Positions 7,643 to 64,000 of a DNA stretch of 64,000 nucleotides are shown piece after piece. The DNA lies in NCBI GenBank assembly GCA_037447605.1, contig CM074814.1, positions 310,001 to 374,000 of the forward strand, written 5' to 3'. The translations under genes were made by a program, and so were the position numbers. The notes under the pieces were generated by a model. It made no database searches, was not told the origin of the DNA, and saw only the letters and a list, made by a program, of their open reading frames with translations. The stretch is from Zygnema circumcarinatum SAG 698-1b (Eukaryota > Plantae > Zygnematophyceae). Each line of letters opens with the position of its first letter. Position 1 is the stretch's first letter.

Positions 7643-15792
<8,150 letters not shown>

Positions 15793-35954: not shown

Positions 35955-37852
35955 ATGGCGGCCATAGCCCAAAAGCTAATCCTTCCCATGTCACCATGGG
36001 CACCCTTCCGCCTATCTGGAGAACTCAGAGACGTAATCGTTCGCATCGGCAGCAAAGAGCTGCGCTTGCACCGCTTCCCCTTCTTCACGCGGAGCCCCAA
36101 ATTGAAGGAGAAGCTTCATCATCTTAAGGATGAGGCAGTGCTCGAGCTCGACGAGCTTCCCGGGGGGCTGCAGGCGTTCCATGCCATTGCAGACTACTGT
36201 TACGGAGTCTCGTCAGCCATTCCGAAGACCTCCGTGACTCACACTCTTTTGGGTGCATTGCATTTAGAGATGACCGACGATTTTTCTCCGGATAATTTGA
36301 TCAACGCTTGTGTTGGGTATTTGAAAGCGGAGGTTTATACGAATTGGAAAGCCTGCTTGGAGATTCTTAATGATGCGGTTGTGAGGAAATATGCGCACAC
36401 TCTTGGGAGCGACATCGTCTCCGCCTGCCAAACGACCATCTCAGGTGACTTTTTTATGAAACTCCAAAAGCAGGTCATATTATATTGTTATTGTTAAGTG
36501 ACAATGTACGAATTATGGATATTGTTAACGTTAACCGATTCCTTATACTGAAAGTAGAGCAGGCAATATAGACCTGCTCACTGATAGAACGGTACATTCT
36601 AATAAACTACTTTTTACTGCATGACGAACTAACTAGACTGATTAGCCTGACTGGTTAACTGCTTGACTTCTTGACTGGAACAGTTGGTGAGGGACTTGCA
36701 GTCTATGCAGAATCCATTGACCACCTTCCTGATCCTTTAGAACGAGTTTCGGAGACATGGAACTTCTTCAGACATGTCGCGGCATTGCCATTGGAACAAT
36801 TGAAGGCTCGTTTGACCGTTTTTGAGGAACACAATGTCACATTTATCGCAACAGGGAACTCCCTTGCTTCTGCAGGAAAGAAATGGATGTTTGAACCTTT
36901 GATACACGAGGATGATTCCACAATGGTTTCCGACGCAGGGTTGTCTCCGACCGAAGGAGCAATGAAGCTTCAAGTAATTCTCACATACCTTGTGAAAATG
37001 CTTGATTGGCCTCTAACTAACGTTAAATGTGAACCTTGTGAGTCAGCGCATGGAAGATCGGAGCAGATGAAACTTACCATTCCTCCCAGCCCTTCATATC
37101 TCGTCACATTGATGAGGCACAGCGAAGCCTTGGGCTCAAAATTGGCCTCTGATATTCAGCGCCGCATTGGAAAGGTTCTTCCTCAAGTCGGATTTGAGGA
37201 AGTGAAATCACTTCATCCAGAAAGCGTATGCACTATTTTCGCTCTCTATGCAAAGGAACTTCCAATCAATGGAACTGCTGCTTCTGGAAACTTAATAGCT
37301 GCTGGAAAGCTCGCGGATGCTTACATTCTTAAAGCTGCGGAGAACAAGACGTTGACTCTTGCGAATCTTCACGCTCTATGTGGAGTGCTGCCAAAGAATG
37401 CCCGAAAGAATTGCGACATTTTGTACAAAGCGATCGACATATTTTTGGTGAACAACACTGATGTGAGTGAAGATGATCGTGTGAAGCTCTGCGATCACCT
37501 CGCAGGAGAGAATCTTGAGAGTCTTAAGCTCTCGCAGGAGATGGTGAAGCATGCTCTGCTGGGAGGGAGGCTTCCTGCAAAACCGCGTTTTATCTCAGCC
37601 ATGTTGGCCTTCCATGAAAAGGCTCTCATGGCGGAGAAGAAGAAGGTAGAGGATCAGGCCAAGACGATCGAATCCCTGCATGGCTCAGTGAAGAGGATGC
37701 ATGAGGAATTGGAGATCACTCGGGCTTCGTTACAGATGGAGAAGAATACTACCAACTGTCTAATGGCGGAGGTGGAAAAACATTCTAAGAGGGTGAAGTT
37801 CAGCGTGTCAGCAGAGGAAGGGACGCCAAGGTCGGTTTTGCCGCAGCGTTAG
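35955..37852 (+). CDS. Divergent BTB-NPH3 (NRL-like) protein, type A, near-identical inverted duplicate; exons 35955-36444 and 36702-37852; about 546 aa
   Basis: Same exon lengths (490 and 1151 nt) as 21997-23894, with only scattered substitutions. Confidence 0.85.
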
Positions 37853-40163: not shown

Positions 40164-42559
40164 TTAAGCGAGTGCAGGATACACATGGGAAGGAATGACT
40201 GATTCTCGAACACGGAAGCCTGGCGTCACAGAGAACGCTACTTGCTGCACTGTTACAATTTCAGACGAGTCGATAGACGACACCAATTTCATTAAAGCAG
40301 GGTCAAATGCAGCTCCCCTTGCAACTCTGAAGATAGAGGCAGGTGGGTTGAAGCCCTGCGCCAGTTTGTGCATTGACCACACCGCTTTACAGAGGGCCAT
40401 AAGCTTGGAATTCCTTCTTCTTACATTGAAATAATCTTCAAGCGATTCTGAATCAGGATAAAGGGTTACTTTATCTTTCAGAAAGTAGAAAATGGCCCTA
40501 AATTTGTCATCCACGAAGCTATTGAAGCGCTCCTCTTTCTCTTCAATCGTCCACCGCTCTTTTTCCTTCAGCTCCTTAAAATGCTGAAAAGCGTCACGGC
40601 GTCGCTTCGTTGGGTCAAGCCAAACAGAAAATTCTAAGGGAGAAAAGCATTCGTTCTCAAAATTGGCAAACATTATGGATGCAATGTATGCCTCCAACGC
40701 GTCTTTTGCATGTGCGAGCCTGCAGAATTTCACTCCCCACTGAACCCTTTCAAAAGGAAAAACCCACAATCTTGTCCGATTTTTCGCAAGAACTTTTCTT
40801 TGTAGAAGTTCAGCACAGTAGCATGTAAGAGCTCTCGACACTTCAATATTCGCTTCCTGAAGATCATGAGGCTCTGCGAGGGAGCAATCGAAATAGCTCC
40901 TTCCCTGTCGCCACTTCTCCACCTCCATCCTCAAAGACTCGACCTCCTTCGCCTGCTCCTCTCTCTTCGTCTTCTCCAACATAAAGGCCTCCCTCTGAAA
41001 CCTAAACATCGCCATAAAGAACTTCCCCTCCGTCGGAAATCGCCCCTCCTCCAATGCATGCAATATCATCTTTTCAGAGAGCTTGAGAATCTCAGGATTT
41101 TCTCCCACGAGGTTGTCACAAATCCTCACACGATCTTCTTGGCTCACTTTAGGGTTCTTCTTCAAAAACATGTCAATAGCCTTATACAAATCATCGCAAC
41201 ATAGTCGTGCAAACTTGGGTAAAGTTTCACACATTATGTGAAGATCATCCAGAGTGAAGCTCTCAACCTCTTGTACGGCCCAAAGAATATAAGAATCTTG
41301 CAGCTTTGCAACTGCGATCAAGTCCTCGGAAGCTTCAGATTCATCAGCTTGAATCTCATTCGAATAGAGAGTGAAGAGAGTGCACACATCTCCCTGATCT
41401 AACGATTTCAGGTCCTCAAAATTGATTTTAGGAAGCTCGTTTGAGAGACGGCGGTACAGCTCTAATGTCAATTTCGAGTCCTGGACTTGCTGGCTGTACC
41501 TCAATAAAGTTACAAGGTATGAAGGATTAGGGTGAAGATTAGGTCCACAACCTTCCTTTGCCACACTTGTGGGCGTACTGAGCATCTTCACAAGGTAACC
41601 CAAAAGTGCTTGAAGCTGCTTTCTCCCCTCGGCCGGAGAAATTTGCAAGTCTGAGAACATTGTGAGATCAGGATCGTCTACCGCCGGTGCAAACATCCAT
41701 TCTTTTCCCGTGGACGAGAGAGAGTTTCCCGTTTTGATGAAAGTGACTTCATGTTCCTCAAACGTACTCAAAAGTGCCTCTAAAGCCTCAAACGGTAGCG
41801 CCACAACCTTGTTTAAGAGGTTCCATGTCTTCAAAACTCGCTCCATTGGATCGTCGAGCTTGTCGATGGATGCCGCATATTCTGCAATTCAGCCTCGCGA
41901 ACATTCGGGTGAGACACAAGTGAATAAGAAATGAGATTATCGGCATAAGTCTACGGATTATGATCGTTAAGGTCAATTAGTGCTTAGAGATGGAAGCATG
42001 AGAAAAGACAATTAGTGCAGGAGATGCATGATAGTAGGTCAAAATTTTAATCAAGACTGCCAAAAAAAAAACAAAACTCACCTGAAATCGTCTTATTGCA
42101 GGCGGAAACGATCTCCTTCCCGAGGGAGTGCTTGTATTCCCTCACCACAGAATCTCTGAGAAGCACAAGGCAGGCCTCCCAGCCACTGTACACTTCTGCC
42201 TGCAGAAATGCAGTACACACGCTCACCAAATTCATTGGGGGAGAATATTCGTCCGTCATCTCCAACTGCAGAGCAGCCAATAGAGTGTGAGCAGCTGTGG
42301 TCGCTGTGAAACTTGGGGTGATTCCGTAACAGTAATCGGCGACGGCATGGAACGCCTCCGAACCGCCCGGATGGTGCTCCAGCTGCAGCTCCGCCATGGC
42401 TACCGCATTCTGAAAATGAAGTTTTTCCTTCAATGTTTTGCTCTTTAAGAACAAGGGGAAGCGATGAAGCAGAAAGCATTGGCTTTCGACGAGAACGCGC
42501 ACGTCGTGAAGTTCTGCTGATTGGCGGAAATGGGTCCATGGCGATGCAGGAGAGGCCAT
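40164..42559 (-). CDS. In-frame fusion of BTB-NPH3 (type B) with the GIL1/IRKI-type (GrpE-like) C-terminal domain; exons 42559-42082 and 41881-40164; about 731 aa
   Basis: Exon 1 is the BTB domain. Exon 2 runs without a stop from the NPH3 block (KLQDSYI...LPKFAR..CDDLYKAIDMFL) through ...EVEKWRQG into RSYFDCSLAEPHDLQEAN...FDPALM...VTPGFRVRESVIPSHVYPALA. Confidence 0.85.
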
Positions 42560-44324
42560 GGATGGGCGAAGGGAACGAATTTACTTTGAAAGCTGCAAGC
42601 TGCAATGAGACAAAGTTATTAATAGGATTTTTTCTCTTTGACGTACTTGATTTTAAGTGTCTTAATATAATGCCTAATTTAGTACGCAAGCAGCCAAATG
42701 GAAGATAAAAGGTGGCGTAGGAGTCTGCCCCAGAGCCTACCAGAGCCTTTTAAATTAATCCTCAAACTAGAATTCCTTACAATATTAATATCTAGAAAAT
42801 GAGGCGGGAAGGATTATACAGCGGTCAAGGACAGTCGAATAAAAATAGGAAACGGAGAGGGAGAATGCTGCTGCGAATGCAAAAAAAAAGGCCACGGGCC
42901 AATTGGATTTATTCTTATTTCGGATCTTTTGGCTGCAACGCACACAGTGTTCCGGCAGAGGGAGCGAGATAGAGAGAGAGAGTGTGTGAGAGAGAGAGCG
43001 AGAGGGAAGGAGAGCGGCGGGGACACTCACGCAGATATTTAGGCAATGATGCTCCTTATTTCCACACCTCTGACCTCCTTCGCAAAAAAGTCCACTTCGG
43101 ACCTCTCTCCCCTCTTTCCTTCCTCTCTCACACTCCTCTCTCCCTCTGTCAAATTACACTTCAATTTTCTCAAAATCTCCAATAAACCGTTCCACCCTTC
43201 CTCCCGGTCCGTCCTTCCTTCTCGCGCCCTTGCAGGAGGGTAAGACTCGCAAGGCCAAAGAGAGCTCGCCGCCTCTTTGTGCCCAGGCTCTGCCGGCGAC
43301 CTCTCTCAGCGATAGTTTCCAAGGCATGCGATGGCCGTGATTGGCGGAGTCGATCCTGGGAGGAACTGGACGGCTGCGATTGCGCCTGCTGCGATCGGAC
43401 GGCTGCACGGCGCTTTCTGCGCCGTCGGCCCCCGAGGGAGGTGGAGGGTCCTGCGGTGTGTTGTGGCATGCAGGGCTGCTGACGTGGCGGCTTTTTGTTG
43501 CGGCTTGCTTCTAGGAACAACATTTAGGAGAGTGTCTACAACAACTTATTGGAGGGAATGAAGCGTTGTTGGGTCGAGGCGTAGCTCTCCGCTCCTAACG
43601 TTTTCTGTTGTGCTTGGATCCTTTGCGCCCAGTTCCTCGTGGTTCCCCATGATGCTGATGTTGTGAATGCACATTTGGTGGCATTATCGCCATCGTGAGA
43701 TCAATGCTACATCCTGTTGTTGTTGGTGTCGTTTCATGTCATGGCTTGTAAATTGCGTTTGTTGTTATCGGATGTGGATGAAACGATAGAATCGGAATCA
43801 AACTCACGATGGCGAGGGCATCAAATGGACATGGACAGAAAAACGACATGAACAACCAACTTTGCATTTCCATGCAAGCCATACTAATTCCTCGTGGTTT
43901 CCCATGATGATGTTGGCCATGCACATTTGATGGAGTCATCGCCATCGTGAGATCCATGCCCCATCCACTCCCTCTTGTTGCGCTCCATGTTGGGAAGTAA
44001 CTGCGGGGTGCGGGTCTATCGAGATTGGGCCTTCAGTTCCACTCACACGTGCGAAGCGACCGGCGGTCAATCAACGCGCGCGCCCCGCCTTTCGGTCCAT
44101 GCAGAAGCGTTCCAGGGCGAGGGAAGGAAGCCCTCGGACCGCCATGGCTGCACCTTCCAGCACTTTCCTCTGGAGGACCACCACCTCTTTTTAAGCAGCT
44201 AGCCGAATTTTTGGATTGCGTAAACGAAGCAATATTCTGATGAGACGTTGGCGGGAAATCATTGCAAGAAAAGTTTATTTCTTTCTTTAGTCCGTTTGGG
44301 TCATCAAGGACAGCAGCTATTCCC

Positions 44325-46112
44325 ATGGCAGCGACGAGCAGCAAGCAAAGCGTGGCGTGCAGAGGGCAGAATAACTCGAAAAAAGGTCTTTCATATAAAT
44401 GCGCGTTAACGAAGTGTCCACAAGATGCGCGAGTGCGAAAAAAAAATTGTGTCTCGTCATCTGATGCTCAAAGCCATGATGAGATCAGCACTGCGTTTTG
44501 TGAAATGCTGATGGGGAAGTCGTCCAATCTGATGATACTAGCTCAAGATTGGATGCAGGAATTTCAAACCGATCTGTATGAATTCTTTCCAAGTCGAGGA
44601 AGTTTTGACAGGCCGCGTTTGGATGGTGTTAATCCAAATCAATCTGATCAAGATGGGGGAGGTGGCGCCATGAGATTCTTGGCTTCTCTTCCTGGAGCGT
44701 TGATTCGAGGAATCAACGGTACAGGAGGCGGCATAAGGTGCAAGGGAAAGGACGAACAGGAAGCAGATCATGTATTTCCATTTCAGAATGAGCTGTTGGA
44801 AAGGAGTCGTCCTGACTCGCAAACGCAGTTTCAGGATCAGAGTCTGAAGGATACTCTGATTACAGCTATTGAAGAGTTTCGTTCAAGCCGAGACACGTGG
44901 GAGGAAAGGGGCCGGCTAGTTGAGACGGGTATGGAGGCGATCAAGGGGCTGCTGTCGAAATTTGAAAGGATGGAGCAGGCAGTGAGATTCGAGAAAGAGT
45001 CTGAGAACTCTGATCGCGCATGTTTGGAGAGGCAGCTGACGGACTTGAATGAAAAACTAGCGTTGATGAACGGGGAAAATATTCAATTGCAAAAGTTTGC
45101 CAAGGAGCAAGAAGAGCGAGATCGGTTATCGATAGAAAAGTATAAGAAAGAACGAGAAGATTTAGAAGGTCAGTACAAAAAGGTTCTCTCCAAAGAGCAA
45201 GAAATGGTGAGGACGTACGAAAAATCTGTCGGTCATCTTCAGGTGGAACTCGGGAATATCAGATTTGAGTTGAAAACCTCTCGAGAGGACGTAGTGAGAT
45301 TCAAAGCCGAGAAGGACCAAGCCCTCTCAAAACTATCCATGCTTGAACGTGACATTTCCTCTAAGGATACCAGTAGTGGTTCGTATGATAGCTCTCGCGC
45401 ACAGCCTCATGATCTTCAGGAAGCAAATAATGAAGTTTCGAGAGCTCTTACATGCTACTGTGCTGAACTTCGAGAAAAACTTACTCTGCTGGTGGCAAAT
45501 CAGAAAGAATTTTGGCAGCGTCTATCAACGCTTAAGCTGGGAGTGAAATTTTGCAGGCCTGCACATGCAAAATGCGCGTTGGAGGCACACATTGCATCCA
45601 TAATGTTCGCCAATTTTGAGAACGAATGCTTTTCTTCCTCAGGAGTTTCTGTTTGGCTTGACCCAACGAAGCGAAGCAGTGATGCTTTTCAGCATTTTAA
45701 GGAGCTGAAGGAAAAAGAGCGATGGATGATTGAAGAGAAAGTGGAGCACTTCAATAGCTTCGTGAATGACAGATTGTGGGCCATTTTCTGCTTCCTGAGT
45801 GGTCTGGGAGCCAATTGGCATGATCTAGCATGGGTTGAAGATTATTTCAATGTAAGAAGATGCAATTCCAAGCTTATGGCCTTGTTTAAAGCGCTGTGGT
45901 CAATGCACAAGCTGGCGCAGAGCTTCGACCCTCCCGCCTCCATCTTTAGAGTTCCAAAGGGAGTTGCATTTGACCCTGCTTTAATGCAATTGGTGTCGTC
46001 TATTGACTCGTCTGAAATTGGAGCAGTGCAGCAAGTAGCGTTCTGTGTATCTCCAGGCTTCCGTGTTCGAAATTCAGTCATTCCTTCCCATGTGTATCCT
46101 GCACTCGCTTAA
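44325..46112 (+). CDS. Coiled-coil + GIL1/IRKI-type (GrpE-like) C-terminal protein, copy 3, about 595 aa (inverted paralogue of copy 2)
   Basis: The ATG at 44325 is equivalent to the copy 2 start. Intact ORF with an extra N-terminal insert of about 40 aa. Confidence 0.82.
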   Translation: MAATSSKQSVACRGQNNSKKGLSYKCALTKCPQDARVRKKNCVSSSDAQSHDEISTAFCEMLMGKSSNLMILAQDWMQEFQTDLYEFFPSRGSFDRPRLDGVNPNQSDQDGGGGAMRFLASLPGALIRGINGTGGGIRCKGKDEQEADHVFPFQNELLERSRPDSQTQFQDQSLKDTLITAIEEFRSSRDTWEERGRLVETGMEAIKGLLSKFERMEQAVRFEKESENSDRACLERQLTDLNEKLALMNGENIQLQKFAKEQEERDRLSIEKYKKEREDLEGQYKKVLSKEQEMVRTYEKSVGHLQVELGNIRFELKTSREDVVRFKAEKDQALSKLSMLERDISSKDTSSGSYDSSRAQPHDLQEANNEVSRALTCYCAELREKLTLLVANQKEFWQRLSTLKLGVKFCRPAHAKCALEAHIASIMFANFENECFSSSGVSVWLDPTKRSSDAFQHFKELKEKERWMIEEKVEHFNSFVNDRLWAIFCFLSGLGANWHDLAWVEDYFNVRRCNSKLMALFKALWSMHKLAQSFDPPASIFRVPKGVAFDPALMQLVSSIDSSEIGAVQQVAFCVSPGFRVRNSVIPSHVYPALA

Positions 46113-47351: not shown

Positions 47352-49486
47352 TTAAAACTCAAATTTCATCGTTTTCTGAAACTTGCATATTCCATTTTTC
47401 TTCGCTCTACCTATCACTTCGATCACGCTCCTTCCAAAGAACATTTCCACTTCGATTTCTCGGTTATCCAAAATATTGTAGTTCTTTGGTAGCTGCAGAA
47501 CGAATTTGCCCTCCTCTTGTACACCTTCATCAGTGACGTACTTCGGGGAACTTTCGGTTGTACTATACAAAACAATTTCTGAATGTCCTTGATTAGCAAG
47601 TTCTGGCACAAACAAAACATGCTTGAAACTTTCGTCTTCTTTTACTTTCTGATGAACTTCCACGAAACGTACGAAAATATCGTCGCACACAGGCAGAAAA
47701 AATGGCGGAAAAGGACGGGGTATGATGCTGAGCTTATCCTCCGGATCGGAGGGCTGAAATATCCTTGAAGCGCTAATTCCGTACGTCTTCTGGAGGCACC
47801 TTGAACCTGGTCGCAATTCAGGTCTAAGTGCATATAACGCGGCACCGACACAGACTGCACCGCCGGGATTGGGCGGCCGCAGGACTTTAAGCTCCTGAAA
47901 CAGTTCCTTCATGCGGTTAAAAAGATATTCTGACGAGGAAAAGCCGCCGACTGCAACAACGTGTTGCACTTTCGGGGCAGCTTCAAGCTGATGGGCAATA
48001 AGGTTCAAAATTTTCTCCACCACGGGATCGAAAAACCCTCTCACTTCATCAGGCGAAATTTTAATCTCATCGAAACTGCATGGAGGATTCTCGTTCTTAA
48101 AGTCGTAGTGGGTCCAATCATCGGCAAGTTCAGATGGTATTGAAATCAGACAGACTTCCCTTGAAGACGTGCTGTTGTATACATCAAAAACTGGAAGTCA
48201 GGAAATTTTTGATAGATCTCACTTATCATCATTTAGCTATGGCATCTTGACTATTGGCAGTGCCCCAAATCAATCGCCGACACAACTGAGTAGACTGTAA
48301 GAAAAGAGAAATAACCAACTAATTTCAATGTCAATTAAATTACAGCAGAAAAAGCGCCACTCGGATGCAAACGTTATCTCTCTTCTTAAAGGAAAGAACG
48401 TGCTTACTCGAAATTGCATTTATAATCCTCCCACTGTCGTAAAAGCGCAATCTCTGTAGTTGGATACGATTCAATAAACTTTGTCCAGCAGCCAATCTTT
48501 GACTTCACATGTTCCAAGAAATTGCTGTCAACATCAATACTCCCACACAACTCCCCAATGCTTCTTATCACCTCCCTCGTCCTCCCTCCCTCCTGCAACT
48601 CCTGCACAACGATATCAACTGTACCCCCCCCCGCATCAACCACTAGGAACTGGTCGCCCTCAGAAAGATGGAAATCTTTGTCTTCTTGGCAGTATATGGA
48701 GGCAGCTTCAGGCTCAAGTACAATATGGAGTGGAAAAGGACTTCCCCTTCCTGAGTTGCAGCCTTCCTCCTGAACAAGTCCAGCATCGTTTACGATTTTT
48801 CTCATTCTCTGCTTCGCTTTATCGTCCCACATTGCTGGAACTGTCACGGCCCACTCAATATCTGAATTTGTAATGTGTTTGCCATATTGTTGCTTCACGT
48901 CTTTGAGGACAAATTCTCCAAGAAACTTCAAGTAGTCTGATATCGCTTTATCTACCGAAAGCCCATCAGGAAGGTCCGGAATCTTCGACTTGTCGCTCTC
49001 CCGCGGTGCCAAATGCAGCTTGAAAAGCTTCACGAGGTATAACTTTCCAGCTGTAGAATTTTCCAATTTCTCACTTTCATACGGACTTTCTACAGAACCT
49101 TTCTTCTTCTTGACCCGCTCAACCGCCGCAAAATAGCGAAGAACTGCAGGCCACCCCCAGTCCCTTGCCACGTACTCTCCTGTCTCACTTTTTTCGTATA
49201 GAATCACCGTTGCCGTTTTACAATACGGCTTTTTCAGAAATTCACCTTGTCCTAGCCAATCTTCAAACATCCACCATTTTTCAGGCTGGCTTTTTGATAT
49301 ATAGGTGAACCCTGAGAAGGTCGTCCCGAAATCGAGACCAACAACAACGCGGGATTCGTTGAACGAGGAAACTTCTGCTGATGTCGAACCCCTTTCACTC
49401 TCTCCCCCTGCTCCTCTATTGCCTCCCGGTTTTCCTCCAACTTTGCCCTTACCCTTCCCCTTCCCTTTAAGTTTATATTTCCCCAT
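47352..49486 (-). CDS. Atypical Hsp70 (HSPA12-type), copy 2; exons 49486-48408 and 48171-47352; about 632 aa
   Basis: GLDFGTTFSGF, AVTVPAMW, LEPEAAS, VVDAGGGTVD and VGGFS motifs. Phase-2 intron in the same position as in copy 1; exon 2 starts align (GPNYNNECRIEIP vs DTSSREVCLISIP). Confidence 0.88.
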
Positions 49487-50339: not shown

Positions 50340-51770
50340 ATGGCAAAAACAATTTTCAGCAAAATTTTCCTTCCTTTTTCTCCTCCAAAGACAGAAAAAT
50401 CTTCCCAAAACAACGACCAGCCGCAGCAGAGTTCCACCAAAGCGCAGGATTTTTGTCACAGTGAGGGTTCACCTTCAACCGTGAATCCAACCGAGGGTTC
50501 ATCTGCAAATGAGCAGCAGAACCAAGCTCCCAGTTGCGAGGAATCCATGGACAGAAAATCGCCGGAGATTCAAGATTTAAAACAAAAGGGATGTGGAATG
50601 GGTGTAATATGTGGAAAGAGTTTGGTGGATGGTTTCCAAAGAAGAGGAAAAATCAAGGCAGGAAGTAAAAGAGAGAAAGAGATTGCTGCTGCAAATGACA
50701 GAATTCGGATAGAGAATGAAAACTTGACTTGCTCACAGCTACAGAAGCAGGTTGAGGAACAGGAGGAGATGCTGCTGAAACTCGGAAATCACATGAAGGA
50801 GAAAGAAACAAGAGTTCAGATTCTCCGTAAAGAGAAACGTGATCTCAAACGAGAGCAGGAAGAAGCGAGAAAGAAAATCAAGAGGATTTTGGAGTTGAAG
50901 GGAAGTGAAACAGAGGAAGACAAGGCAGACTTGTGTGCAGAAGTAGAAAAGTTAAAAAGTGAGAGAGACTTTGCCCTTTCAAAACTCACCGTACTTGAAA
51001 ACGATGTCGCTTCCAGGGACACTCTTAGTGGTTCTTATGACATCCTTCTCGCACATCCCGAAGACCTCCACGTGGCGATGGCAAAAATCGACACATTTCT
51101 GAAGTCTTTTAGTTTAGAGTTGCGAGAGAAGCTCATATTAAATTTCAAAGGAGATTTGTGGCAGCTCCTTGAAAGGCTTGCAAAGGGAGCAGAGTTTGTT
51201 CGTCCTGCACACGCCAATTATGCGCTGCATGCAGCAATTTCTGCAGTAATGTTTGCGAATTTTGAAAACGAATGTTTTCTTCCTGCGGGGCCGACATTAT
51301 ACGTTGATGCGAAGGAGCGCAGCAGTGAAAGTTTCAGGATCTTCACGGAGCTTAAGACAGAAGAAGGATGGAACGATGCAAAGACAAAGGTTCAATTTTT
51401 TGAGTTTCTTGAAAGCAAACGCAGTGGTTTGATTCAAGTATTGACGAGTGCAAACGGTTTAGGGCTTCAGGCTAGCCCAGAAGAAGTTGTGGGAGAATTC
51501 GGAGTTCAGAGAGAGAATCTCAAACTAGTGTCTCTTTGTAAGGCAGTATGGTCACTTCACAAGTTGGCGATGAGCTTCAATCCACCTGCTTCCATATTTA
51601 GGGTTTCTAGAGGAGTTGAATTTGATCCTGCACAGATGAGTTGGGTTCCTGTCATCGACTCATGCGAAAATGAAACTCTAAAGAGAGTGGCCTTCTGCGT
51701 CAATCCGGGATTTCGTGTCAGGAAATCGGTGATTCCAGCTTCAGTATATCCGGAGATTGCTAAGATTTGA
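50340..51770 (+). CDS. Coiled-coil + GIL1/IRKI-type (GrpE-like) C-terminal protein, copy 4, about 476 aa from the first in-frame ATG
   Basis: SGSYDILLAHPEDL, FANFENECF, VWSLHKLAMSFNPPASIFRVSRGVEFDPAQM...VAFCVNPGFRVRKSVIPASVYP. Confidence 0.8.
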   Translation: MAKTIFSKIFLPFSPPKTEKSSQNNDQPQQSSTKAQDFCHSEGSPSTVNPTEGSSANEQQNQAPSCEESMDRKSPEIQDLKQKGCGMGVICGKSLVDGFQRRGKIKAGSKREKEIAAANDRIRIENENLTCSQLQKQVEEQEEMLLKLGNHMKEKETRVQILRKEKRDLKREQEEARKKIKRILELKGSETEEDKADLCAEVEKLKSERDFALSKLTVLENDVASRDTLSGSYDILLAHPEDLHVAMAKIDTFLKSFSLELREKLILNFKGDLWQLLERLAKGAEFVRPAHANYALHAAISAVMFANFENECFLPAGPTLYVDAKERSSESFRIFTELKTEEGWNDAKTKVQFFEFLESKRSGLIQVLTSANGLGLQASPEEVVGEFGVQRENLKLVSLCKAVWSLHKLAMSFNPPASIFRVSRGVEFDPAQMSWVPVIDSCENETLKRVAFCVNPGFRVRKSVIPASVYPEIAKI

Positions 51771-54024: not shown

Positions 54025-55565
54025 ATGGCCACTCCTGCATCGCCATGGACCTCTTTCCGCCAATCGGCAGAACTTCACGACGTGCGCGTTCTCGTCGACA
54101 GCCAATGCTTTTTGCTTCATCGCTTCCCTTTGTTCTCACGGAGCAAAAAATTGAAGGAAGACCTTTATTTTCAGAAGGCGGCAGCCATGGCGGAGCTGCA
54201 GCTGGAGCACCTTCCAGGCGGTGCGGATGCGTTCCACACCGTTGCTGATTACTGTTACGGAATCCCCCCAAGTTTCACGGCGACCTCGGCTGCTCACACT
54301 CTAATGGCTGCTCTGCAGTTGGAGATGACGGACGAATATTCTCCTCCAAAGAATTTGGTGGATGTTTGTACTGCATTTCTGCAGGCGGAAGTATATAATG
54401 ACTGGCAGGCCTGCCTGCTGGTGCTCAGGGATTCTGTGGTGAGGGAATACAAGCACTCCCTTGGGAAGGAGATCGTTTCCGCTTGCAATAAGACGATTTC
54501 AGGTGAGTTTTGCTTTTTTCTGGCAGTCTTGATTAAAATTTTAACCTACTATCATGCATTTCCTGTGCTAAATTTTCGTTTCTCATGCTTCCATCTCTAA
54601 GCACTAATTGACCTTAAAGATCACATGCCGTAGACATATGCTGATATTCTCTTTTCTTATTTACTTGTGAATCACCCGAATGTTTGCGAGGCTGAATTGC
54701 AGAATATGCGGCATCCATCGACAAGCTCGACGATCCAACGGAGCGAGTTTCGAAGTCATGGAACCTCTTAAACAAGGTTGTGGCGCTACCGTTGGAGGCT
54801 CTTGAGGAACTTTTGAGTGCGTTTGAGGAACATGAAGTCACGTTCATTGGAGCAGGAAACTCCCTCTCGTCTACGGGAAAGGAATGGATGTTTGTACCGG
54901 CGGTAGACGATCCAGATCTCACAATGTTTTCAGACTTGCAAATTTCTCCGGCCGAGGGGAGAAAGCAGCTTCAAGCACTTTTGGGTTACCTTGTGAAGAT
55001 GCTCAGTACGCCCACAAGTGTGGCAAAGGAAGGTTGTGGACCCACTCTTCATCCTAATCCTTCATACCTTGTAACTTTATTGAGGCACAGCCAACTCAAG
55101 GACTCGAAATTGACATTAGAGTTGTACCGCCGTGTCTCAAAGGTGCTTCCTATAACCAATTTTGAGGACCTGAAATCGTTAGATCAGGAAACTGTCTGCA
55201 CTCTCTTCACTCTCTATTCGAATGAGATTCAAGCTGATGAAGCAGAAGCTTCCGAGGACTTGATCGCAGCTGCAAAGCTTGCTGATTCTTACCTTCTTTG
55301 GGCCGTACAAGAGGTTGAGAGCTTCACTCTGGATGATCTTCACATAATGTGTGAAACTCTACCCAAGTTTGCACGATTACGTTGCGATGATTTATATAAG
55401 GCTATTGACACGTTTTTGACGAAGAACTCTAAAGTGAGCCAAGAGGATCGTGTGAGGCTTTGTGATAATCTCGTGGGAGACAATCCGAAGATTCTCAAGC
55501 TCTCTGAAGAGATGATATTGCATGCATTGGAGGAGGGAAGAGTTCCGACCGAGGGGAAGTTGTAG
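54025..55565 (+). pseudogene. BTB-NPH3 type B (inverted paralogue of the fusion gene's N-terminal half), truncated by an LTR insertion; exons 54025-54502 and 54703-55565
   Basis: Co-linear with 42559-41030 up to PTEGK. The sequence switches to TGTAG... at 55561 and a stop follows at once. Confidence 0.8.
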
Positions 55566-55820: not shown

Positions 55821-58576
55821 GGCAATGTTAGCGAACATGGCCCCAGGTTTTGTTCCCGGACTCTACTTCTACCCGAGAGGCCGAAGTGCGAAGACAGTTC
55901 GGAGGAGCGGCCGAGACACGAGGAAACCAGATCGCTTTTCACCTGGTACCAATCTGATCCAAGAGAGTGCCCTCAGATTCAGCTGACCTTGTGGGAGTTG
56001 CTCACTGCTTCATGATTACCGAGCCACAGACCTTTGAGGAGGCGCACGACGGAGTCGATGGCGATAAGTGGCGGGTTGCGATTGATAGCGAATGGGACAG
56101 CCTGATCAAGAACGGCACGTGGAGATTGGAGGAGCTGCCTCAAGGGAGGCGAGCTATCGGCTGCAAGTGGGTCTTCAAAGTGAAGAGGAAGGCAGACGGA
56201 AGCGTGGATAGGTACAAGGCGCGGTTAGTGGCGAAAGGATACGGCCAGCAATATGGGATTGACTACATGGAGACATTCGCTCCGGTGGTAAAGTTCAATT
56301 CCTTGAGAGCCTTGATTTCCATTGCAGCGGCTGAAGGAATGCACGTCCATCAATTGGACATCAAAGGCGGCATTTCGTATGGTGATCAGCGGAAGAGATT
56401 TACATGGAGCGGTAGGAGGAAGGTCGTCCCGGGGAAGGAGCACCTAGTCTGTCGACTGGTGAAGAGCCTGTACGGCTTGAAGCAGGCGCCGAGAGTGTGG
56501 TACGAAATGATTGACGATCTTTTGAGGAGGAATGACTTTGCTCGGTTTGGGGAGCGGATGAATTCGATTAATGCAGATCAGGAGAGGCGGAGACATCATG
56601 TTCGTTGGGATCCCATGTCGACGATCTGTCATGGTAGGCCTCTCCTTGAAAGAATCGGATCTTTGAAGGGTGCTTCGGGCAAATTTCAAAATGGCTCGGA
56701 TCTGGGAGAAGTAGCATGATGCTCTATTTAGAATCGCGGTGAAGAGGCGGGATGGAGGCTTGTTTACATGTCAAAGTATGCTTGGATGTGCTTGCCGATT
56801 TCGAATGGAGGATGCTAGGCGTGTTCGGCCCATGGAGGTCGGCCTTAGGCTTCGAGAAGGAGATGTCACCTTCGTGGATCACGGAGGCACAAAAGATGTT
56901 GAGATTGCCATACAAATCCCGCGTTGGGAGTCTAATGTGCCCGGTATTGAGCAGCGTCAGGACTTGGCAGCGGTAGGCACCGGCGGCCCGATTCATGGAA
57001 ATCCGGGCCTCGAGCATTGGGGCGTGAAGAGGATTTTCGAGATATGTGAAGGGGCCTTCGGTGGAGTGTCCGGTATGAGGGCCAACGAGTGATTGCTTCC
57101 TCTGAGACCAGTTGGGAGGGAAGTAATACAAATCACGTCCTGCCTTCACGGCACCGTTTCGTTACGAATGGAGGAGGAAGCGTTTCGTGGGGTTGTTCAA
57201 AAGTTCACCGGAGGACTTCGGTGGCGTTGCTCGAGCCGCGGGCGAGTACATGGAGTGCTTGTCATGCTTGAAGGAAGGAGTGTAGTTCATGCAGTTCTTT
57301 GAAAAGAATGCAAGAGGACCAGCGGCCAGATTACCTTGTTTCGCAAACCGATCAATGTCGATTGCCGCGGTGGAAACCATGTTCCACAAAGAGGACCAAA
57401 CACGTTCGGTCGCGGTATTACCGTATGTATGCGAGGAGTTGGTGAGGGCTTGATTGAGGTGAAGTTCGTGAGCACCAAGGCTTGACGCGGACCGTAACAA
57501 AAGAGTTAGTGAGGAAACACACTATTAGTCAGCGGGGGAGGAGTTGATAAGAGTTTTGGGGCCAGCATGAAAACTAGAAGTTCAAAAGAGGGGATTGTTA
57601 GTGTATGATAGTTAGCATGTTTTGTTGGAACATTAGTTTTGTGTTTTGTGTTGTGTGTTCCTTGGCGTGATTGTGCGCCTAAGTTGTGCAGAAGCGGTCT
57701 ACGGACATTTAGTCGGCGGAAGAGTAGCGGTCGAAAGTGACAGTAGCGGCAGCGACAAATCAGAAAGTAGTAAGCGCGGGCAGCGGCTTGTAGGCGGAGT
57801 GAAGATGTGGCGGCAGCGAATCGCGAATCGGAAGTGGCGGCGTCAGCCTGCTGGATTGAGCGATTACGGACTTGGTAGCGATCGCGGCGTCAAAATGTCG
57901 TAGCGATTCATCATTATGCGGGCGGCGTCGGATATGCGGTGGCGTCGCGGCGGCAGCGAGTTTGTAGCGTCATCAATCTTGGAAGCGAGGGTCGGATCCT
58001 CGGCGCCAAGGCGTGGATTAGCTTAGAGGCCGGTAGGATCGGCCGAAGGAAGCGTCACGGGATCATTGTGAGCCGGCGGATCCGGCCGGCCAGGATGAGG
58101 ATGGGGATAGGGCCACTTGCGGTCATTGAAGTCGATGTTGTGACCGTTGTATGGTAGTGTGGATGTTGTGACATAGTATATAGTGTGTTGTTTTTGTATG
58201 GTTGTTATCTTAACTTCTGGATCACCAGCGTAGCTATTGTAGACTCGGCTGTTGCTCGTATTTGCTTAACACTACACACTTGCTGTCTTTGCGGAGTAGA
58301 GTGGGCTTTTGAGTTTATTGGGCTACAGTTGAGGAGGGTCTCTCAATTGTGGTGTTAAGATCATTATTAAGGAGTTTTAGAGCCGAGAGCTTTCTCCTAT
58401 CCTTTTCTCTCTGTTATTCCGTTGTGCATATTCTGAGAGGTTCACTCTGTGAGTAAAATGGGCTATGAGTGAATGTGGGAGTTTGGGAAATGTCATCATC
58501 GATTGGAACGCGAACTCCGATGGAAGGTGATGCGAGTGGAGAAGCTGGCAGCAGTGGAGGAGTCCCTCCACCAACA
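55821..58576 (+). mobile_element. Degraded or error-rich copia element, 3' part (RT, RNaseH remnants, PPT, LTR about 57596-58576)
   Basis: RT motifs in ORF 55967-56719 (KARLVAKGY, YGLKQAPR) with frameshifts. PPT AAAAGAGGGGA then TGTTAG. The LTR ends ...CCACCAACA, the same LTR end seen next to the PBS at 63992-64000. Confidence 0.85.
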
Positions 58577-58583
58577 AGAGGGA

Positions 58584-61500
58584 TGTTGGTGGAGGGACTC
58601 CTCCACTGCTGCCGTCCGTTCCTCCATTCGGGTCACCCTCCGTAGGATTGGCGTTCATCATTTCGACTGCTATCTTCAAACTCTCATTCACTCATAACCC
58701 GGCCCCTGCGAAGTGAAATCCCGCGGCAAATAATGCGCGGCGAATAACGAAAATGAAATAGGAAAGCTCACAGCTAAAAACTCCCTTAATAAAATAATTC
58801 ACTCCTTACATTGAGAGATTACTACGCCGAGCGATACCGGCCACTGCCTCGCGGCCAATACAAAACAACAGTAATATGGCGGCTGGCCTGCTGAAGAACA
58901 GCGGCTGAATGAATTGTTTGCCTACAGCAAAAACGATCGCCAAATACTATGTCACTACACACGTGACAACAACATGCTACGAAGCTTCACAACATCGACT
59001 GGCGGCACAGGAAGCTATCGATCCTAATCCCTCTTGTGTCGGCGGATCGCTCACACGAGATCGCTGCTTTACTTTAAAATTAGGATCGACTTCGACCTTA
59101 AGATTCGATCCCATTAACTTTTAGCGCGTAGGATACTGACCTTGCCTCCAAGATAGATGTAGCGTCCCGATCACCGGCGTGCGTCACCAGCGCCGCAAAC
59201 GATTCAGCGCGCGCTCCATTACAATTGTTCTGAATGGCCTTGTAGGCAATCGGCGCCACTTGGCGCGGAATTGCATCGGCCAATCAGTACGCCCAGCGCC
59301 CGCTCGGTTTCGATTATTGCTTGATTTAGCGCGTAAGCGTCCGCATCTTTCAGTCGCTCAGCGTCGTGTCGCGCCCAGCGTCACATTCCGAATAATTAAG
59401 CGTGGCTGCGCTTATAAATGCGGTCGACTCGTAGCGCTCTCCCATAGACAAAAGTGGAAATGCCAGCGCGTCGGTCTAAGCGCCTTGTCGCCGCCAAAGA
59501 CGCTTGCCACAACATACGCGCACAAAACTAATGTCAACTGACAAAGCATGCAGTGACTAACCTAGCATACACTAACGAAGCCCTCTTTGGGACTTTGGTT
59601 TTGCATGGAAACCCGGCCAACCAACGCGATGGCGGCCGAGGGGTTTATACATTAGCTCCTTTGCGTCGGCGTAGCGGCTTGCTCGCCGTACCTCACGGCT
59701 TCGGCGTCGTCCGAGCCGCCTGCACCGGCCAACTCCAGTACGTAGTAGTGCTTTGCTTGGCTGCGATGTTAGCACGGTGAAACTGGTGAGCGCTTACCGG
59801 GTTTCCGCGGTGATCGATGATTGATTATCGGTGAACAAGGTGTCCGGGCGTTGTTCTCTCTTGCATTCATCAAGAAGCTGCTGAAACCACCGCCTCCTTT
59901 GCGGCATGGCCAGTACCCCGTGTACTTCGCCCCTCTTTACGTACTTTCGATAGCCTCTGGGAGTCCTGCCGAGCACGGGAAGCTCAGCGAAATCGCTCGC
60001 CTCCATGCAAGGTGGTAAGGAAACACAGTCGAAGCGTGATGTATCTACTATCGCGCCCCAATGTCGAGTCGTATAGCCAATCCGCTGCGGTTTGTGCCAC
60101 TACCATCTGATCACATAATCGAAGCGTCCTGCCATGTCGATATCGCTTCGCGGCTCGATGCTGCCGAGGCCAGTTATACGTGGCGAATAGGTGGCGGTAC
60201 CGGTACGCTTCGCCCGGTCAGGACGGCGTTCAAATACATGGGCTGCATCAGACTCGATTGCGGACACAATAGACGCGCTGAACATCTTGCATTGCCTGCA
60301 AACGCATTTTCGAAGGTGACGTCTCGCCCGACGATGGCGCTTTATCTCCGTGAGGGGGCGGCTTTAGAATCTTCGTGGCCAGGCAGGGCAGGAAACAGTG
60401 ATGCGTACTTAACACGGCGCAGAATAAAATTTGCCCATCTTTGCCCCCCCTCTTATTTGCGTCAGTCTTGCGCGCAACTGGCGTCGACATCTTGAAATTT
60501 CTGGCGCGACGGCTTCTTCGAGGAGGCGATTCTTTGGCCGAAGGCTCACCATTATGAGATCATCAGCGTGGAGTCGGCGAACATGATGTCCGCCTGCTCT
60601 TGGCGGTGGAATGATACGTTTGAATCGGTGAAACCATTCTCCTCGAAGATCATCTATCTTCTGCGTACCACACTCACGGGCGCACGCTTCAAACCATATA
60701 GGCTCTTCACTAGTCGACAGACTAGGTGTTCCTTTCCTGGGACCACCTTCCCCTCCGGCTGCTCCATGTAGATCTCTTCCGTTAGATCTCCGTACAGGAA
60801 TGCCGTCTTGATGTCCAACTGATGGACATGCATTCCTTCAGCCGCTGCGATGGAAATCAAGGCTCTCAAGGAGTTGAACTTTACCACTGGAGCGAAAGTC
60901 TCCACGTAGTCAACTCCATACTTACGGGCGTATCCCTTGCGCCACTAGCGGCGCCTTGTATGCTGTCCCGCTTGATGCGCCTTCCTCTTGACTTTGAAGA
61001 CCCATTTGCGGCCAATAAGCTCCGCCTCCCTTGGCTGACTCCTCCCAACCTCCGCGTGCGTTCTCTATCAAGGCTGTCCCACTTTTCATTTTATCGATAG
61101 CCACCGCCATTTATTAGCCATCGACTCCGTGCGTGTGCTTCCTCAAGGTCTGTGGTTCCGTGATCATAAAGCAATGGGCAACTCCCACGAGGTCAGCTGA
61201 ATCTGAAGGCACTCTTTCTTGGATGAGGTTGTTCTCAGGCGAGTACCGATCTGGTCGCCTCCTGTCCCGACTGCTCTTCCGAATCTCCTTCGCGCTTCGT
61301 CCTCTCGGATAGAAGTAGAGTCCGGGTACAAAACCTGGAGGCATGTTAGCTAACATAGCCTCTCTCTCGGCCGCTTCAAGGTCCTCTGACTCTTGCGTGT
61401 GCAGCGGCACCGTCTCCACGGAGTTCTCCTCTTCCTCACTCAACTGAGTGTGCACTGGAATCGTCTCCGTCGAATTCTGCGGCTCCTCCGCATGCGCCTC

Positions 61501-64000
61501 CTCTGGCGACTCTCCAACATCAGCAGGCTCGCTTGACGCAGCTGCTGGCTCGGCTCCTTCACTCTGTGATGTGCTGGCATCCTGCACAGTGACATCACGC
61601 TCTCCACTCCGTCTCTCCCTCCTCATACACGATCTCGAAATCCGCTTTCGCTGGAGGAGAGATCTGAGAGTCTGCAACACGCTCAACAGCACTTCCCTCA
61701 TCAACTGTAATGTCCCTCGTGCTCAAGACCTCCTGCTGATCGAGGTTCCCACACCCTATACTCGTCGCATTTTACATTTGGTGTTACCAGCGCGAGAAAC
61801 GCAACCCTCCATTTCGGGGGTCAAACTTCTTCTTACGTGGCCTTGAAATGGAGTCGCGACCCGACATCAGCACGCCAAGGTCCTCGGTGGGGCCTTGGGC
61901 TTCCTCCCTCCACGTCTGCTCTCTGGGACCTGGTCTTTGGGGAAACGAGAGCGGACATCATTTCTAATATGCCTTGCAGCCGGTAAAGCCGCTTCTTCTC
62001 CCAAAGGAAGCTGAAAGGGGAATCAATCAACATGGTCGAGCCATGTCCCCGTATCGATTATAGCTTCGGTACTCCCTTTCTGAGGGAATAGAGAGTGAGA
62101 ATTCATGCCTTATACCCATGAGTTCGCCCGGGAACTCTCTGCGAACTCCTTGATTTGAATTCGCCGCCATTGTCTGAGCGCAAAGCCTTCAGCTTCTGTC
62201 CTGATTCTGTCTCCGCCTGGTTCAGCCAATCTCGAAAGGCTCCGAAAGCCTCTGACTTGTTCTTGAGGAGCGTAATCCAAATCTTCCTCGAGTAATCGTC
62301 GAGGAACGTGACGAAGTAACGTGCTCCGCCGTTGGTCGCCGGTGTAACTGGGCCACACAAAGTCAGAATGTACCAATTCCAACTTTTCTCGTGCTCGATA
62401 GGACTCGTCTCCACTCCTCACGAATGGTCTCCTGTGCGCCTTGCCCTCCACACACTCCTGGCACAACCCAAGCTCCTTCTCCACTGCACCCGGGTCTAGC
62501 CCGCGGACTAGCAACCCCTTCGCGACCAACTGGCATTCCTCTCTATGGTGTAGTGACCAAGTCTTCCTATGCCATACATCTACGGCATTCTGCGGTTGCA
62601 TTGGCATGCTCATAATTCTCCCTCTTATAATCAAGATAGCCAGCCCTCCTCTCTCACCAACCCCTAAGCATTGTCTCCCGGTTTACGTATGGATGGCCGC
62701 ATGACTTCTCCTCCAAATAGAACACTTTGTATCCTTTCTTCACACACTTGGCTACTTGGGGCAGCAGGGAGTGCCTTTTGGCACCGAGGGGTGTGAAACG
62801 TCACCAATTGACCCAACTTCTCTTGTATGTCTTCTTCATTGATGACCGAGCCGTCTCCGAGTATCATCCTCACGGCTCCACCTCTCGTCACGGTGACTCC
62901 TTCACCGGTTGCTGAATGGACTGAGCGTGTCTTCTCCAAGTCGTCGAGCTTGGAGAACATCGATGTGTCTCCGCACATATGCGTAGAAGCGCCGGAATCA
63001 ATCAGCCACGGCCGCTTCGGATCCTCTACCTGAATCCTTCCCACAAACGCATTCTCAGTATTCTCCGCCAGCATGAGGTTGTTCTCAACTGCTACCTTGC
63101 AGTCTGAACTCCTGTGGCCTCTCTTCTTGCATTTGAAGCAAGTGCCACTGAACGCCTTCTTCTCCTTCTTGCCGGATGAAGTCGCGTTTCCTCCCTTCTC
63201 TTGGCTGCCTCTGTTCTTGAAGCAATCGCTGGAGTAGTGGCCGATCTTGCCACACGTATAACACGTAATCGCCGAGCGTTCTCCTCGGGCTGACTTCGGG
63301 GCGCCTCCTCTTCGATTTGGTCGAGTGTGCAACGCAAGCACTTTCTCCTCAGGGCTGCCGACATCCTGAATGGAGTCCTCCTCCTTTATCCTACGCTTGA
63401 CTTGCTCAAGAGTCATGCGTGGTATTAGTGGGAATTTGTCTCAAAGCCGCCAGCGCCACATCATCTTGGGTCAAACCCCGAAACACAAGCATCTTGCCAG
63501 GGTCTGCCTCTAATGGTTTCCCAGGGGCTATGAACCTCTCCATCAGAGCATCAAACCTGACCATATAAGCTTCTAGTTTCTCATCACGAAGTCATCTTCA
63601 TCTTACTTTGGCTAGCGTGTAAAGCGGCGGTCGTCACATTGTCTTTTACATCATACATTTCCTCTAGGCATCTCCACATGGCATGAGAGGTCTTCAGATC
63701 ATAAAGCATAGAGGACGGACTTCCTCTTACGCTCATTACAATCTGCGTCAGGGCCTTGTTGTCCTTGGCTTTCCATCGTGCGAGCGCCACGTCGTGCTCC
63801 GACTGCTGCTCCGCTGAGGCTCCAACCGGTAACTCCGGCGCCTTGATGCTGCCATCAACATACCCAAGCAACCCTTTGCCTACAAGCAAGGGAACCAACC
63901 TCCATCTCCACGCCTTGTAATCCTGCCCATCAAAGGCCGGAATGCTGAACTTGACGTGGTCCTCCGAGTCTCCATGAGCTCTGATACCACTTGTTGGTGG
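58584..64000 (-). mobile_element. Nearly full-length copia element (gag-PR-IN-RT-RH, frameshifted, very noisy at about 59000-60600); the 5' LTR continues beyond the window
   Basis: gag start (F.GQDY..WRW.LVPLLVGKGLLGYVDG), two CCHC knuckles (CYTCGKIGHYSSDC, CFKCKKRGHRSSDC), protease WLIDSGASTH, integrase WH..L.H, C..C, FLDDYSR and LRSDNGGEF, then RT. Confidence 0.9.
63978..63989 (-). promoter_or_regulatory. Primer-binding site complementary to initiator tRNA-Met
   Basis: TGGTATCAGAGC on the minus strand, 2 nt inside the LTR end (...CCAACA). Confidence 0.9.

Follow-up and report, generated by a model that had tools for sequence, protein, structure and literature searches.

A 64,000-nt stretch of the genome of Zygnema circumcarinatum SAG 698-1b (assembly GCA_037447605.1, contig CM074814.1, positions 310,001 to 374,000 of the forward strand; hereafter the window), eukaryotic and streptophyte-like in content, contains five tandem genes that are members of the GIL1/IRKI family by sequence. 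Structure prediction indicates that the head in which the encoded proteins end, together with the helix that precedes it, very probably has the fold of the head, or beta-wing, of GrpE. GrpE is a bacterial and organellar nucleotide exchange factor whose head docks on the nucleotide-binding domain (NBD) of Hsp70. Profile comparisons make it likely that the two heads share a common ancestor. Gene order and predicted structure further raise the prospect, which we put at even or slightly below, that the head acts on an Hsp70-like protein encoded beside the fifth gene.

Copies 1 (25952-27787) and 2 (31141-32808) on the minus strand and copy 4 (44262-46112) on the plus strand are long open reading frames (ORFs) with the shared C-terminus. 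Copy 3 (40164-41846, minus strand) is an ORF whose N-terminal half is an NPH3 domain, and copy 5 (50340-51770, plus strand) is an ORF with a probable ATG at 50340, its start codon placed by alignment with the other copies. All five are intact, with 476-616 codons and strongly conserved C-termini; the segment 51540-51770 holds the end of copy 5, its final 76 codons with the stop. In the last 60 residues the columns that are invariant in all five copies are I-F-R-V, G, F-D-P, M, V, V-A-F, V, P-G-F-R-V-R, S-V-I-P and V-Y-P, and they reproduce exactly the pattern given in a preliminary description of this locus. Pairwise identity among the copies is 32-41% for complete proteins and 44-50% in the C-terminal 250 residues. 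At these identities the copies are, on the evidence of their sequences, paralogues, and their common motif is accordingly a product of conserved descent and not of chance. Each copy exceeds the Pfam gathering score of PF24994 (GIL1_IRKI_C; 31.8-37.8 bits against a cut-off of 27), and none matches PF04859 (DUF641) at an expectation value (E) of 1 or less. The five group as one tandem clade in a quick tree (support 99), and a six-frame hidden Markov model (HMM) scan of the window found these five family genes only.

In each protein a disordered N-terminus and a stalk, probably a coiled coil, appear to precede a module of ~230 residues in which a helical domain is followed by a beta domain of 60 residues and six strands. 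In copy 5, a low-complexity and charged, heptad-like region that we read by eye from the translation as a probable coiled coil (50340-51008) precedes a predicted helical domain of ~170 amino acids (51009-51509), which lies within a conserved module of 230-250 amino acids and matches IRKI, GIL1, MIEAP and fungal proteins. The GrpE-like head proper (51510-51767; 86 amino acids) comprises the last bundle helix and the six-stranded beta-wing, as delimited by an AlphaFold2 (AF2) model, PDB matches and hhalign. Corresponding heads were placed by PF24994 matches and alignments at 25955-26206 in copy 1 (minus strand, E 4e-9) and 31144-31416 in copy 2 (minus strand, E 2.5e-9); those of copies 3 (40167-40418, minus strand) and 4 (45858-46109, plus strand) match PF24994 at E 1.9e-9 and 4e-8, respectively.

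The fold assignment comes from AF2 models built without templates and from family sequences only. A profile search with the last 250 residues recovered 414 cluster representatives across plants; 115 of these, with the five window copies, made up a family alignment of 120 sequences, each of which was also scanned against Pfam. A model of the last 253 residues was confidently predicted (predicted local distance difference test, pLDDT, 90.8; predicted template modelling score, pTM, 0.89), with helices to residue 188 and then six short strands. When this whole model was compared with the PDB by Foldseek, the matches were noise and GrpE stood at rank 33; the head was therefore modelled alone. The model of the last 86 residues, which covers the last helix and the beta domain, again has six strands (pLDDT 88), and its matches in the PDB at ranks 1-12 are all GrpE or GrpEL1 (probability 0.87-1.0; template modelling score, TM, normalised by the query, 0.41-0.57), with the match at rank 13 falling to a probability of just 0.06. 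The entries matched (9blt, 9bls, 1dkg, 3a6m, 4ani, 8gb3 and 9a81) include human, Escherichia coli, Thermus, Geobacillus and Mycobacterium proteins. Foldseek E-values for these matches are modest, at 6e-3 to 0.35. VIA-align, which makes no use of Foldseek, was run against 48,161 representative chains and placed four GrpE chains on top, at Z 6.8, 5.7, 5.7 and 5.3 and spanning model residues 1-86; the first chain that is not GrpE scored Z 3.1. Predicted structures give the same picture. In the AlphaFold Database (AFDB) Swiss-Prot set the head model retrieved GIL1 and IRKI, followed by dozens of bacterial and archaeal GrpE proteins (probability 1.0, TM 0.5-0.58), and in the ESM Atlas it matched GrpE clusters at TM 0.62-0.69 (root-mean-square deviation 2.3-2.8 A over 76-77 residues), with MIEAP alongside at 0.64. 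Thus the structural comparison proposed in the preliminary description agrees with its reading of the C-terminal domain as a divergent GrpE head, and so does the profile similarity.

That profile similarity falls on the beta domain. The Pfam GrpE family (PF01025) is matched below threshold in two window copies, copy 4 (E 0.023, residues 565-607 on profile positions 115-156) and copy 3 (E 0.15, residues 510-551 on positions 116-156); the last 40-odd residues thus fall on the part of the 165-position profile that corresponds to the beta domain. Across the 120 family members, PF24994 is found in 119 and GrpE in 13 (best E 1.8e-4), always on the beta domain. GrpE is the sole foreign family that recurs; every other occurs in at most 3 of the 120. 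We then compared the family head with an alignment of 17 diverse GrpE sequences, drawn from plasmid and chromid records of Proteobacteria, Actinomycetota, Bacillota, Bacteroidota and a haloarchaeon. With hhalign the two alignments match at a probability of 78% and a P of 1.8e-5, with a score of 36.7 over 49 columns. None of 150 column-shuffled GrpE alignments reached this score (9.6 +/- 2.0, maximum 22.4), which lies ~13 standard deviations over these controls; the reversed GrpE alignment scored 12.9. An HMM built from the 17 GrpE sequences found 11 of the 120 members at E <= 0.01, with GrpE columns 144-186 on the beta domain every time, and the reverse HMM search returned the same register. 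This is the register in which the preliminary description had aligned the GrpE anchors by their spacing, and the hhalign and HMM matches in it are significant. Two wider searches yielded little: a profile of the whole 250-residue region matched nothing among PDB sequences at E <= 10, and copy 5, used as query in a word-indexed homologue search, retrieved one protein.

The motifs behind this alignment can be followed residue by residue. The 17 GrpE sequences carry G-x-x-F-D-P-x-x-H-[QE]-A, V-x-x-V-x-[QKR]-x-G-Y and R-[VL]-[LI]-R-P-[AS]-x-V-x-V, in agreement with the GrpE pattern given in the preliminary description. The family-wide consensus reads I-[FL]-R-V-x-x-G-x-x-F-D-[P]-x-[YF]-M-E-x-V, V-x-F-M-V-x-P-G-F and V-[IVL]-[KR]-[CS]-x-V-Y, and G-x-x-F-D-P-x-x-[HM]-E, G-[YF] and V-[IL]-[RK]-x-x-x-V are collinear between the two. 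In human GrpEL1 the F-D-P motif corresponds to D171-P172, of which P172 touches R107 in lobe IB of the NBD and D171, which is strongly conserved, forms a bridge to the lid (PMC11685456). Most land-plant members have K or R at the position of the arginine in GrpE's R-P-A. One clade, comprising P0195, P0200, P0209, P0230 and a Ceratodon gene that is paired with an Hsp70 gene (see below), has [YF]-H-E-S and R-S-R-V, and with them both hallmark residues of GrpE; this clade also gives the strongest GrpE HMM matches. The absence of the arginine, to which the preliminary description drew attention, is therefore true of the window copies but is a peculiarity of their lineage, along with the change from histidine to methionine.

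The helical region tells a different story from the head. Searched against AFDB Swiss-Prot, the 253-residue model has its best structural matches in Arabidopsis IRKI and GIL1 (E ~1e-10). Next come the Mieap proteins of nine vertebrates (E 7.6e-4 to 1.1e-2, probability 0.99-1.0), and after them a long series of GrpE proteins (E 0.03-0.15, TM ~0.2). In the Atlas, the whole module matches plant DUF641 clusters at a TM by query of 0.78-0.81, Basidiomycota proteins with a PF01926 G domain at 0.69, mollusc MIEAP proteins at 0.65 (207 amino acids), unnamed Mucoromycota and Ascomycota proteins at 0.61-0.64, and GrpE at 0.31-0.33 over 109 residues. Language-model features, with the query's own families excluded, likewise rank MIEAP first and GrpE lower. 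PF16026 (MIEAP) has no match in the five copies, nor is it among the 25 families most often matched across the 120 members. Predicted structures and language-model features thus suggest a relation of GIL1/IRKI/COST1 with Mieap that would span plants, animals and fungi, and it does not appear in the papers searched. Within the helical domain, a stretch at 51200-51280 (model residues 65-90) reads A-H-x-x-x-A-L-[EH] with F-E-N ~11 residues on, and recalls A-H-K-F-A-L-E ... D-N-L-E-R-A at the end of the GrpE stalk, at the same spacing and in a pairing picked by hhalign. This likeness lies within the shuffled null (P 0.25) and was set aside.

The module also behaves as a portable unit. In copy 3 an NPH3 domain (PF03000; residues 14-246, E 3.5e-18) joins the GIL1-like module exactly at the module's start within one continuous ORF, and it is the position of this junction that marks the 250-residue module as portable. 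A BTB ORF lies just upstream of copy 3 (42047-42559), and the whole of 40164-42559 on the minus strand looks like a BTB-NPH3-GIL1 fusion. Elsewhere, in gene models taken as annotated, the module shares a polypeptide with nucleotide-binding domains: with a PF01926 (MMR_HSR1) G domain in proteins of Basidiomycota clusters, and with an SMC_N/AAA_23 ATPase head in P0247, a plant protein of 981 amino acids. No fusion to Hsp70 was found in ten long family members that we scanned.

A link to Hsp70 comes from gene order. Copy 5 stands head-to-head with an HSPA12-like atypical Hsp70 gene (47352-49486, minus strand; ORF pieces 48404-49486 and 47352-48044; Pfam HSP70 E 2.5e-6), from which it is separated by a divergent intergenic region of ~850 bp. 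Only the NBD of the encoded protein matches solved Hsp70s in the PDB, and its nearest clusters and homologues carry PF00012 and PF27033, some under the name HSPA12B-like. For 12 homologues of this Hsp70 we inspected the flanking 10 kb, both in the annotation and with six-frame HMM searches, and the pair recurs at two of them. In Ceratodon purpureus (L098) the best Hsp70 homologue (43% identity) is head-to-head with a PF24994 gene of 464 residues. In Klebsormidium nitens (L105) the Hsp70 homologue is head-to-head with a gene of 472 residues for which no Pfam match is recorded and which matches the family HMM at E 7.7e-29 (3.6e-14 with only the head); adjoining this gene is another GIL1-like one. 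The pairing with a non-canonical Hsp70 gene is thereby extended to two other streptophyte lineages, evidence that goes beyond the preliminary description. If a genome of 100-350 Mb holds tens of family genes, a figure that we assume, well under 1% of given genes would have one within 10 kb by chance. Two matches in 12, each with the genes diverging as they do in the window, are hence unlikely to be coincidence, although this is a judgement and not a formal test. In a quick tree whose deep branches are poorly resolved, the genes paired with Hsp70 do not form one clade. The Ceratodon locus (3701-11815 of L098) has two HSPA12-like genes flanking one GIL1-like gene and so mirrors the two Hsp70-like and five GIL1-like genes of the window.

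These observations suggest a mechanism in outline. The protein would dimerise through its stalk, and the head would grip the NBD of an ATPase, most likely, in this lineage, the HSPA12-like atypical Hsp70 whose gene diverges from copy 5 across the intergenic region. Through such a grip the protein would modulate the nucleotide state of its partner, whether as an exchange-factor-like co-chaperone or as an adaptor that recruits this Hsp70. A functional link with an HSPA12-type Hsp70 is supported chiefly by the recurrent head-to-head pair, which favours, without proving, a co-chaperone or nucleotide-exchange role. Dimerisation has a precedent within the family: COST1, an Arabidopsis DUF641 protein, is a homodimer that elutes as a dimer and interacts with itself (PMC13189119).

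Compared with GrpE, GrpEL1 and Mge1 (PF01025), the window proteins share a beta-wing and preceding helix that superpose (TM by query 0.5-0.69, Z up to 6.8), collinear motifs that include the F-D-P by which GrpEL1 contacts Hsp70, a probably dimeric architecture with a stalk, and, for copy 5, an adjoining gene of the Hsp70 family. Unlike GrpE, they would have a coiled coil and an intramolecular helical domain of ~170 residues in place of the long paired helices and of the four-helix bundle formed between protomers. They are also ~3 times longer and nuclear-encoded, with no evident organellar role, and the Hsp70 beside copy 5 is HSPA12-like and atypical, not DnaK-type. With the GIL1/IRKI/COST1 proteins (DUF641; PF24994 with PF04859) they share a homologous region of 230 residues at the C-terminus (E down to 4e-65 with the profile), which aligns with Macadamia IRKI. 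They differ in lacking the PF04859 DUF641 domain that some relatives carry (e.g. P0251), in forming a tandem clade of their own with one member fused to NPH3, and in having P where land-plant proteins have K or R. Mieap/SPATA18 (PF16026), the nearest non-plant family by language-model features, resembles them across the whole helical-plus-head module, with predicted models on both sides, and in the succession of a disordered or coiled-coil N-terminus and a structured C-terminus. If the proposed exchange function holds, the BAG domain, HspBP1/Sil1 and Hsp110 would be functional analogues; none of them gave a structural or sequence match in any search that we made.

Several results weigh against a GrpE-derived head that serves an Hsp70. 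All five window copies fall below the Pfam threshold for GrpE, the best at 14.8 bits against a gathering score of 25.8. With E. coli GrpE alone, hhalign aligned the family head in the proposed register without significance (P 0.097), which is why an alignment of diverse GrpE sequences was needed. The window copies have M for GrpE's histidine and P for the arginine of R-P-A. The helical region of ~170 residues does not resemble the stalk or bundle of GrpE at profile level (hhalign P 0.25), and the full model, for which VIA-align ranks GrpE first at Z 5.0-5.3, gives GrpE no margin over ion-channel and other helical noise. On these grounds, and given the far better match to Mieap and fungal proteins, we abandon the earlier suggestion that the layout upstream of the head is that of GrpE. 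In GrpEL1, the short helices of the bundle provide most of the contact with NBD lobe IIB (PMC11685456). As the helical part of the window proteins is not GrpE-like, their mechanism cannot simply copy that of GrpE. The gene pair, too, is far from general. No GIL1-like gene lies within 10 kb at 10 of the 12 loci, namely those of Diphasiastrum, Sphagnum, Calypogeia, Physcomitrium, Riccia, Selaginella, a Ceratodon paralogue, a chytrid, Rhizophagus and Cymbomonas; at the last three, MIEAP-like and GrpE-like neighbours were likewise undetectable. Within the window itself, a second HSPA12-like Hsp70 gene (4244-6184, plus strand; ORF pieces 4244-5233 and 5504-6184; Pfam HSP70 E 1.5e-8) has no adjoining GIL1-like gene by six-frame HMM scan. 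Public read runs that contain the locus also cover intergenic DNA, and one probable RNA run is almost empty, so these reads gave no evidence of transcription. Finally, such biochemistry as the family has comes from COST1 and indicates another partner: this protein binds the dynamin-like GTPase RHD3 and stimulates it modestly, raising its GTP turnover by 20-30% (PMC13189119).

The last result bears on a distinct, if doubtful, possibility: that the head descends from GrpE, or from a shared ancestor, and has been repurposed to dock on RHD3-type GTPases, IRK receptor-kinase domains, ATG8 or lipids, the proximity of an Hsp70 gene being retained synteny without direct physical interaction. COST1 not only binds and stimulates RHD3 but has its C-terminal domain near the RHD3 GTPase domain in an AlphaFold3 model (PMC13189119). 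Together with the fungal G-domain fusions, whose predicted modules match ours at a TM by query of 0.69, and the one SMC_N/AAA_23 fusion in P0247, this supports a head turned onto other nucleotide-binding partners. Mieap, structurally the nearest animal family, is described as lipid-binding through its structured C-terminal region (PMC10845071), and several GrpE residues are missing in the window copies. It is difficult, however, to see how head-to-head HSPA12-like pairs would occur in three streptophyte lineages so far apart if nothing linked the two functionally, and it is the clade of the Hsp70-paired Ceratodon gene that is most GrpE-like in sequence.

Alternatively, a small beta domain behind a helix could have reached a GrpE-like topology by convergence, with neither shared ancestry nor functional analogy. 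The domain is only ~60 residues long, Z stays below 8, the Foldseek E-values are modest, and the Pfam GrpE matches are sub-threshold. We nevertheless consider this very unlikely, as every solved GrpE comes out on top, with a sharp gap to the next match, in two independent aligners, and the profiles align in the same register, far above shuffled controls, with collinear motifs. Most improbable of all is a finding of no biological meaning, produced by an artefactual model or by pseudogenic ORFs. The read runs, which hold intergenic DNA as well as the locus, lend no RNA support against such a view; five intact ORFs, their conserved C-termini, the hundreds of cluster representatives across plants and pLDDT values of 88-91 do speak against it. 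Even taken together, convergence and artefact are decidedly unlikely.

DUF641, GIL1, IRKI and COST1 proteins influence tropism, autophagy, drought response and the shape of the endoplasmic reticulum in plants, and the GIL1 family takes its name from a light/gravitropism mutant. To our knowledge, their conserved C-terminus is still without an assigned biochemical activity. The recurrence of the HSPA12-like pair in Ceratodon and Klebsormidium is new here. No paper in the literature that we searched ties GIL1/DUF641 to GrpE, or GrpE-like domains to Mieap, COST1 or IRKI; CATH/TED, ECOD and InterPro were outside that search, and an automatic structural assignment may exist there. GrpE is not mentioned in the Mieap and COST1 papers (PMC10845071, PMC13189119), and the authors of the latter state that non-plant counterparts of COST1 remain to be identified (PMC13189119). 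In animals, Mieap is likewise described as mechanistically unknown, as is the HSPA12 branch of Hsp70s (PMC13580251). A GrpE-type head would give the GIL1/IRKI family, Mieap and HSPA12 a testable role, in which the head binds an NBD and alters nucleotide release, and the gene pair common to a green alga, a moss and the present genome names a specific candidate partner. If this is true, a GrpE-type head would be working outside the canonical GrpE architecture, with an HSPA12-like rather than a DnaK-type Hsp70.

One could envision, with considerable reservation, a still broader scenario. GIL1/IRKI/COST1, animal Mieap and the unnamed fungal relatives might form a eukaryote-wide superfamily built on a GrpE-derived head, with an ancestral job as nucleotide-exchange co-chaperone of HSPA12-type Hsp70s and with derived members that act on RHD3-type GTPases, fused G domains or receptor-kinase domains. 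HSPA12 genes are massively expanded in Mollusca (PMC13580251). MIEAP-domain and HSPA12-like clusters in the Atlas are both commonest in Mollusca, which may reflect co-expansion and hints that the pairing might extend to animals.

The remainder of the window contains intron-split genes, BTB-NPH3 genes and retroelements. Two BTB-NPH3 genes (21997-24083, minus strand; 35955-37852, plus strand) are near-identical inverted copies, and their NPH3 ORFs of 393 amino acids differ at a few residues; a third, more divergent BTB-NPH3 gene (54025-55565, plus strand) appears truncated beside a retroelement. A GC-rich, low-complexity block at 12880-15792 on the minus strand contains adjacent ORFs of 418 and 521 amino acids with a long stretch in common, identical in both and terminating in a glycine-loop region like that of protein kinases; it reflects a recent tandem duplication or else one introduced by assembly. 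Short runs of N near 6400, 14300, 52500 and 55800 mark assembly gaps. Fragments of copia-type retrotransposon polymerase, integrase and gag lie at 50-1630 and 55967-56719 on the plus strand and at 61114-63416 on the minus strand.

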